Assembly (NCBI GenBank): GCA_002269645.1
Contig: NIVC01000111.1
Coordinates: 124,001 to 188,000 of the forward strand
DNA: 64,000 nucleotides
From: Macrostomum lignano
Taxonomy: Eukaryota
Direction of reading: 5' to 3'
In this document: piece by piece, positions 21,901 to 22,615 of the stretch
Layout of the letters: every line of letters starts with the position of its first letter
Position numbering within the stretch: the first letter of the stretch is position 1
Made by a program: the position numbers and the translations under genes
Notes under the pieces: model-generated
The model's database searches: none
What the model saw: the letters and a program-made list of their open reading frames with translations, nothing else
What the model was told of the DNA's origin: nothing

Positions 21901-22615
21901 CGGACTGCGGCCGCCGGCGCACTGGGGCTGCCTGACCATCGCCGGCCTGCTGCTGCTGAACTCGCTCGGCTCGTCCGTCAATTCTGAGTCAGCGATTCGA
22001 GCCGCGGTCTTCGCCGCCACCGGCATGCTGCTGCTAACGCCGCCAGTTGCCGTTGTGGCCGTCCGGTGCGCCCGGCTGCGCAGCTGCCGCGGCAGCGTTA
22101 GCCTAGCTGAAGTCGCCTACGGCTGCATCTGGCTCTCCGAGTCGGCAGCCGCCTTCGCCGCCGCCTACTTTGCTGGTCGAGGCTCCGCCCCGGTGATGTC
22201 GGCCTCCTACAGCCTGCTGCTGCTGGCCTGCCTGCTCACCAACACCGCCTGCTACTTGGCCTACTACCTGGCTAAGAAGCTGCAGTCCTGGGCTCGAACT
22301 CCGCGTTGCGAGGTGCACCGCTCGGTGGGATCAACCATCGCCGCAGCGTCGGCGTCGACTTTCTGCCTTACGGTGGCGCTGGCGGCCTGGGGCGTGGCGC
22401 TGTGGCAGTTCTCGCTGTCGCCGACAGACTGGAAGCTGTCGCCCGCGCAGTCCCGCTCGGCGCGCAACCGGCCCTGCGCGGCTCTGGGCTTCTTTGACGC
22501 GCACGATCTGTGACACTTTGCCAGCTCCGCGGCCATCTTCTTCAGCTTCCTGTTCCTGCTCACCCTGGACGATGATGTGGCCGATGTGCCGCGCTATAGG
22601 CTGGAGGCTTTCTGA
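18972..22615 (+). CDS. sid-1: SID-1 transmembrane family protein (SIDT1/SIDT2/CHUP-1-like), with an in-frame TGA at 22511-22513
   Basis: Exon 1 about 18972-19934: signal peptide MRPFRFIAAIIVLLLVSW, ectodomain, first TM, donor GTAAAT in phase 0. Exon 2 about 21245-22615 after TTCAAG (phase 0). Family motifs: [67 protein letters not shown]. About 777 aa if the TGA is read through. Splice junctions are inferred. Confidence 0.92.
20162..21200. repeat. Intronic minisatellite, 20-bp unit CAGCTCTGCAATCTCACTCC (~52 copies)
   Basis: Direct reading; variants CTTTACA/CTCTGCA. Lies inside the inferred SID-1 intron. Confidence 0.97.

Follow-up and report, generated by a model that had tools for sequence, protein, structure and literature searches.

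The window analyzed here is a stretch of 64,000 nucleotides of Macrostomum lignano DNA from contig NIVC01000111.1 of assembly Mlig_3_7 (GCA_002269645.1), with window position 1 corresponding to record position 124001. On its plus strand we located a SID-1-like gene with two exons and 781 codons, whose features are collected in Table 1. Two long open reading frames in compatible frames, 18963-19958 and 21200-22513, lie on either side of a single intron. The spliced coding sequence (CDS) comprises, from its ATG, 777 sense codons, an internal TGA at codon 744 and a terminal TGA, and the 2,343 nt of this CDS contain no frameshift, no indel and no further stop. The A of the premature TGA is window position 22513, or record position 146513. 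It was noted that the CDS has a G+C content of 60-65% (GC3 0.65-0.81), compared with 43% for the window. The translation of the first exon equals the first 321 residues of the deposited protein PAA90380.1 (P0001), with the GT donor beginning at 19935. The residues flanking the intron junction (...NKA/RTSPE...) are present in PAA90380.1 and in two further M. lignano sequences, P0002 and P0003, which are described below. Most of the intron is occupied by a 20-bp tandem array of the unit CAATCTCACTCCCAGCTCTG (20169-21193, 51.5 copies, 95% matches; Tandem Repeats Finder). A strong skew of C over G was observed in this array.

Table 1. Coordinates of the SID-1-like gene in the window.
Feature	Position	Strand	Description	Basis
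Spliced CDS	18972..19934, 21245..22615	+	Exons joined GT..AG, phase 0	
Exon 1	18972..19934	+	ATG, signal peptide, extracellular beta-rich domain, first TM helix (residues 1-321)	ORF, sequence
Single intron	19935..21244	+	GT..AG, phase 0; AG acceptor ends at 21244	Sequence
Exon 2	21245..22615	+	SID-1 family transmembrane domain, premature TGA, terminal TGA	
Codons S504, H508, D519	21791..21838	+	Correspond to SIDT2 S564, H568, D579; all intact	
Codon H741 (CAC)	22502..22504	+	First TM11 Zn-binding histidine (SIDT2 H796), upstream of the stop	
In-frame TGA	22511..22513	+	Residue 744, invariant Trp (SIDT2 W799); next base C; NIVC01000111.1 146511-146513	
Post-stop frame	22514..22612	+	33 codons: H745 (SIDT2 H800), remainder of TM11, C-terminal tail	
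Normal terminator of the gene, TGA	22613..22615	+	Position agrees with the family C-terminus	
AATAAA, candidate poly(A) signal	22778..22783	+	About 165 nt past the terminator	Inferred from sequence alone

The truncated reading is already the deposited annotation of this gene. PAA90380.1 ('hypothetical protein BOX15_Mlig005979g1') has 743 aa, is 100% identical to our translation, and its CDS ends at the premature TGA; it was the sole high-identity database match. A literature search on the gene identifier Mlig005979 found no paper. Upstream of the ATG chosen by NCBI, the segments 16325-16495 and 18222-18278 on the plus strand encode the first 76 residues of P0002 with 100% identity, and in P0002 these residues replace the signal peptide. 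Either the two segments are 5' exons, alternative or untranslated, or the older annotation mis-predicted this part.

We then assessed the family to which the gene belongs. The Pfam profile PF13965 (SID-1_RNA_chan) matched residues 188-776 along profile positions 28-593 of 594, with an E-value of 1.2e-78 and a score of 265.6 bits against a cut-off of 28.7. Relatives of solved structure were human SIDT2 (PDB 7y63, E 1e-51), SIDT1 (E of about 1e-51 to 1e-50) and C. elegans SID-1 (E of about 1e-23). By sequence comparison, the SID-1/SIDT match is well past chance. In the alignment to 7y63, the premature stop falls on W799 of human SIDT2, within FFDDHDIWHFLSS. The putative catalytic zinc site of SIDT2 involves H568 in TM4 and H796 and H800 in TM11, together with S564 and D579 (PMC10272179). 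Codons for all five residues of this H3-S-D site are present in the window gene (S504, H508, D519, H741 and H745), and the columns of S504, H508 and D519 are 99-100% conserved in the family alignment. H745 lies downstream of the TGA, so that the annotated 743-aa product has four of the five Zn-site residues. Cysteines C415, C421, C510 and C732 are likewise present, in columns that are 94-100% conserved; their SIDT2 equivalents C484, C490, C570 and C787 are the disulfide cysteines of the extracellular loops (PMC10272179).

HMMER, run exhaustively against 1.84 billion representatives, found 857 relatives, of which 150 were listed, and the motif was counted in these 150 together with P0002 and P0003. 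Among the resulting 152 sequences, D-x-H-D-x-x-H occurred in 106, and every one of the 106 carried W at the position of the stop. The W is followed by exactly 33 residues in nearly all of these motif holders, the same length as the post-stop frame of the window gene, whose tail also keeps the LTLDDD motif. In a separate alignment with 83 near-full-length members, the stop column was W in 75.

These results bear on a preliminary description of this DNA, which had read the gene as a SID-1/SIDT homolog interrupted by TGA exactly at the Trp of the Zn-binding HDxWH motif, with an intact family C-terminus beyond it and no other lesion in about 780 codons. All of this was borne out, the Trp being invariant among the motif holders of the matches listed, and its translation of 22490-22615 on the plus strand was reproduced exactly. 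Its further statement that truncation would remove the second TM11 Zn-site histidine and the last helix agrees with the alignment of H745 to SIDT2 H800, a stop at codon 744 taking away one Zn ligand and essentially all of TM11.

Compared with human SIDT2 and SIDT1 (PDB 7y63, 8jul and others) of the CREST superfamily, the M. lignano gene matches in sequence over the entire transmembrane domain, encodes the same Zn-site residues, with H745 beyond the stop, and the same four cysteines, and has the 33-residue C-terminal length. However, it is just about 30-36% identical to them, it has two exons rather than many, and in the window copy the Trp between both TM11 histidines is a stop codon. Both M. 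lignano copies were also found to be changed at family residues that are 86-96% conserved, namely C251Q, Y391F, F435S, Y491F, N515S, Y535L, H539R, D541G and E675R. Because both copies deviate at such residues, the paralog BOX15_Mlig005979g1 is a divergent, fast-evolving and lineage-specific member of the SID-1 family. For M. lignano, the route of dsRNA entry has yet to be described (PMC11075559).

Two other M. lignano sequences belong to the same 90% cluster, namely P0002, a UniParc entry of 815 aa, and P0003, a UniProt fragment of 412 aa. P0002 comes from the older and lower-quality ML2 annotation. It has W at the stop position and a complete C-terminus ending in RYRLEVF, and it is about 98% identical to the window copy. 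Over residues 39-777, the stop aside, 13 residues distinguish the two, every one through a change of one base, and the independent fragment P0003 agrees with P0002 at each of the first 6, the ones within its span. From the 13 differences in P0002 and the sharing of the first 6 by P0003, it follows that these are two distinct genomic copies of about 98% identity, one with TGG and one with TGA, and not noise. M. lignano DV1 is a neopolyploid with three homeologous subgenomes, S, L1 and L2, whose SNP divergence is approximately 1.4-2.4%, and all three are represented in Mlig_3_7 (PMC10733133). The level of difference between the two copies fits this homeolog divergence.

Five more annotated SID-1-family proteins (loci) were found in M. 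lignano, in two paralog groups. The first consists of Mlig033109g1, Mlig024104g1 and Mlig001878g1 (940-941 aa) and the second of Mlig027904g1/g2 (795 aa). All five carry an intact ...HD(I/V)WHFLS... motif. These genes are about 32-35% identical to the window gene. Each exists in two or three near-identical homeologous copies, with 0-3 residue differences in 941. It was noted that Mlig001878g1 (PAA90387.1, 941 aa, about 32% identical to the window gene) lies on the same 353,632-bp scaffold, outside the window and seven protein accessions away. Other searches for relatives were negative. A homolog search with the full protein returned the gene's own cluster alone, with low-complexity words filling the candidate list, and a search with the 120-residue C-terminus gave no match. 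A scan of metagenome contigs with the 29-mer around the stop, allowing A or G, was likewise without a match, and no orthologs from other Macrostomum species were found among the matches listed in the databases searched.

Because W is encoded in 106 of 106 family representatives and in the near-identical copy, TGA is the derived state. On this comparison the TGA is very recent and does not represent a conserved recoding signal. To compare the two copies further, derived states were polarised against the 83 family members. The window copy is derived at 238 (Y; family F), 534 (A; family L/I/V), 624 (A; family L/F/I), 744 (the stop itself) and 776. The change at 776 is the single post-stop difference from P0002; the window copy has A and P0002 has V, which is the residue in 60 of the 83 family members. 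P0002 is derived at position 608 (P) only, a split of 5 to 1 towards the TGA copy. The 13 residues and the stop that differ in 739 between the copies of the window gene amount to approximately ten times the difference among the homeologs of the sister paralog Mlig033109g1/024104g1/001878g1, which differ at 1-3 of 941 residues (99.7-99.9% identity). We infer that the TGA copy is under relaxed constraint and that the A is real in the genome; the argument for relaxed constraint is made at the amino-acid level and comprises 14 differences with 6 polarisable sites. With a transition bias of 2, random point changes would create a stop in 2.8% of cases in this CDS, and a neutrally drifting copy with a branch divergence of about 1% would be expected to hold 0.5-0.8 stops. 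One stop with no other lesion is therefore the expected look of an early pseudogene, and with numbers this small the agreement is supportive and not decisive.

The explanation that we consider likely is a real nonsense substitution in a redundant homeolog, that is, a young dead duplicate. A very recent G-to-A change would have turned TGG into TGA at the invariant Trp of TM11. The window copy would be one of up to three homeologous copies in a recently genome-duplicated species, and the change would have been tolerated because another copy keeps TGG. The locus may accordingly stand as a redundant duplicate at the first step towards a pseudogene, or as a null homeolog. Translation of it would mainly yield 743 residues, without the third Zn ligand and without most of the final helix. 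With the TGA in the last exon, its mRNA would probably escape EJC-dependent decay. Accidental readthrough at the percent level may occur at UGA-C, and this basal leakiness could yield traces of wild-type protein; nothing suggests that selection maintains the leakiness, and it would not be a selected mechanism. A disabling lesion in one copy together with a near-identical intact copy in the same species was seen. This resembles the fractionation of genes after whole-genome duplication, in which a single point change likewise inactivates one of several copies of about 98% identity; a recent whole-genome duplication is on record for M. lignano, and at least one partner copy is intact. It differs from that process in that the M. 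lignano event is so young that just one lesion is visible. That position 22513 carries a real A is itself probable in our estimation, on the evidence of one assembly.

Two alternatives to programmed readthrough had been named in the preliminary description, a recent null allele and a base error, and these are the two that lead here. Under the second, every genomic copy would have TGG and the A at 22513 would be a consensus error, which we regard as unlikely. Mlig_3_7 is a Canu assembly of PacBio reads that was polished by Pilon with Illumina DNA and RNA-seq reads (PMC5730564), and the error could be a residual PacBio error or a mis-correction by Pilon through cross-mapping reads of 98%-identical homeologs. 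Only 63.95% of the bases of Mlig_3_7 were scored error-free by REAPR (PMC5730564), and chimeric scaffolds, which mix subgenomes, account for 36% of the assembly length (PMC10733133). The ML2-derived sequence has W, and apart from this one lesion the gene is perfect and its tail canonical. The other functional residues, the Zn ligands and the four disulfide cysteines, are intact, as would also be expected under a base error or under functional recoding. However, consensus errors of PacBio and other long reads are mainly indels, and the 2,343-nt CDS has zero indels. Pilon alters bases only with read support, which means that the worms would have to contain a molecule with the A. On the same scaffold, Mlig001878g1 differs from its homeologs at just 1-2 of 941 residues, and this near-identity argues for high substitution accuracy there. 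The 13 other differences from P0002 also show a separate and faster-changing copy.

Recoding of the stop was weighed in several forms, and each was judged far less probable than a base error. Under functional readthrough, which we hold to be very improbable, near-cognate Trp-tRNA at UGA-C would give enough full-length protein, and a low-dosage or regulated isoform would be under selection. Among stop contexts, UGA with a C after it is the leakiest, and the residues inserted at UGA include Trp, which is often the one used; the description of the UGA-C context as leaky in the preliminary account accords with this established knowledge. The 33 downstream codons are open, have the canonical length and keep H745 and LTLDDD, and a stop in the final exon should leave the transcript stable. 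The UGA-C tetranucleotide and the open, protein-like frame past the stop are indeed shared with genes of programmed readthrough. Unlike those genes, with their UGA-CUAG, stem-loop or pseudoknot, this locus shows no conservation of the stop, no CUAG and no downstream structure, and the extension is the indispensable last helix of the core fold and not an added module. The stop is followed by CACU (UGA-CACU), so that the +4 C alone is favourable. Folding of the 120 nt from the stop codon gave -30 kcal/mol, compared with -33.5 ± 3.4 kcal/mol in shuffled sequences (z +1.03), and z was +1.42 for the 201 nt surrounding the stop, with no stable fold in either; no inverted repeat was found that pairs with or covers the stop site. 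An open tail of 33 codons is expected by default at a copy divergence of about 2%, and the lone substitution within it places A where the family conserves V. The proposal of programmed readthrough made in the preliminary description could thus not be upheld, given W in the copy of about 98% identity and in the whole family, no RNA structure, no SECIS element, and a terminator of the same gene that is also TGA. A closely related and slightly less probable reading has a real, fixed TGA in a locus that is still functional, with Trp-tRNA decoding of UGA-C rebuilding the wild-type protein at a low level. If this were true, one SID-1-family homeolog of a neopolyploid would have its dosage tuned by a self-correcting nonsense codon instead of being lost.

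Least probable among the readings considered is another kind of recoding, by A-to-I editing of UGA to UGG, by selenocysteine insertion or by a variant code in which UGA is Trp. Editing would restore Trp exactly, but a G precedes the A of the TGA, and a 5' G neighbour is the one most disfavoured by ADAR enzymes. In addition, shuffled sequences fold better than the surrounding 200 nt, and an inverted repeat that could pair there as an editing substrate was not found. No SECIS element or other relevant Rfam match was found in window 18000-24500 at E up to 1, and selenocysteine was rejected on this ground. Flatworm mitochondria read UGA as Trp, but the scaffold is nuclear, and the NCBI annotation of the M. 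lignano nuclear genome uses the standard code. Because the gene's own terminator is a TGA at the canonical end of the family, a code with UGA as Trp was rejected. Splicing around the stop was also considered and rejected, as the sole spanning GT..AG pair (22510-22524) encloses 15 nt, which is too short for a spliceosomal intron, and its removal would delete W-H.

If the nonsense substitution in a redundant homeolog is real, it shows, on a small scale, how the decay of a gene duplicate sets in in a neopolyploid animal, caught at the first step. Caution would also be called for when Mlig005979.g1 is used as a SID-1-like reference or in RNAi or CRISPR design, as this copy encodes a protein without the last helix while its sister is intact. 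If it is an assembly error, the consequence is a one-base correction of the reference. The TGA finding is an ordinary one. It has no bearing on the uptake of dsRNA by M. lignano, since the species also has an intact copy of nearly the same sequence and two further paralog groups of the SID-1 family. The suggested effect of a null on systemic RNAi or lipid handling is therefore not supported, with at least one intact near-identical copy and five more SID-1-family proteins in the species, and no phenotypic consequence for either process is expected.

Several other features were recorded in the window. A satellite at 36600-50176 spans 13.6 kb and consists of approximately 600 copies of a 23-bp unit, TTTAGCTACGGTATGGAAGGGAA, with 95% matches and a GC skew of about +0.6. 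Immediately before it, at 35246-36595, a 21-bp unit forms an array of 1.35 kb. Tandem arrays were also found at 1-1161, 13288-13537, 25686-27399, 56636-56988 and 58351-59527. These comprise 115/477-bp units at the window start, 18-bp, 31-bp and 30-bp arrays, an (AGAC)88 array and a 16-bp array, the last of which has 74 copies and yields a spurious 450-aa ORF on the minus strand. Tandem repeats make up approximately 15% of the M. lignano genome (PMC5730564), and the satellites of the window are consistent with that share.

On the minus strand, an AlaDh_PNT_N domain (Pfam E 1.3e-20, ORF 30345-30995) marks a gene at 28178-30995. Its annotation covers only 242 aa, although its three ORF pieces add up to over 500 aa. 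A paralogous ORF fragment of this gene, 58% identical, lies on the far side of the 23-bp satellite (50295-50789, minus strand), and the gene and the fragment look like a tandem duplicate pair. Two hairpins were also noted. At 23456-23680 there is a 49-nt inverted repeat, 98% complementary with a 127-nt spacer, that gave a sub-threshold MIR2863-like match, and at 18034-18112 a palindromic 79-nt hairpin resembles mir-7973 on both strands, below the Rfam gathering score. Both look like MITE-type hairpins and not like miRNA genes.
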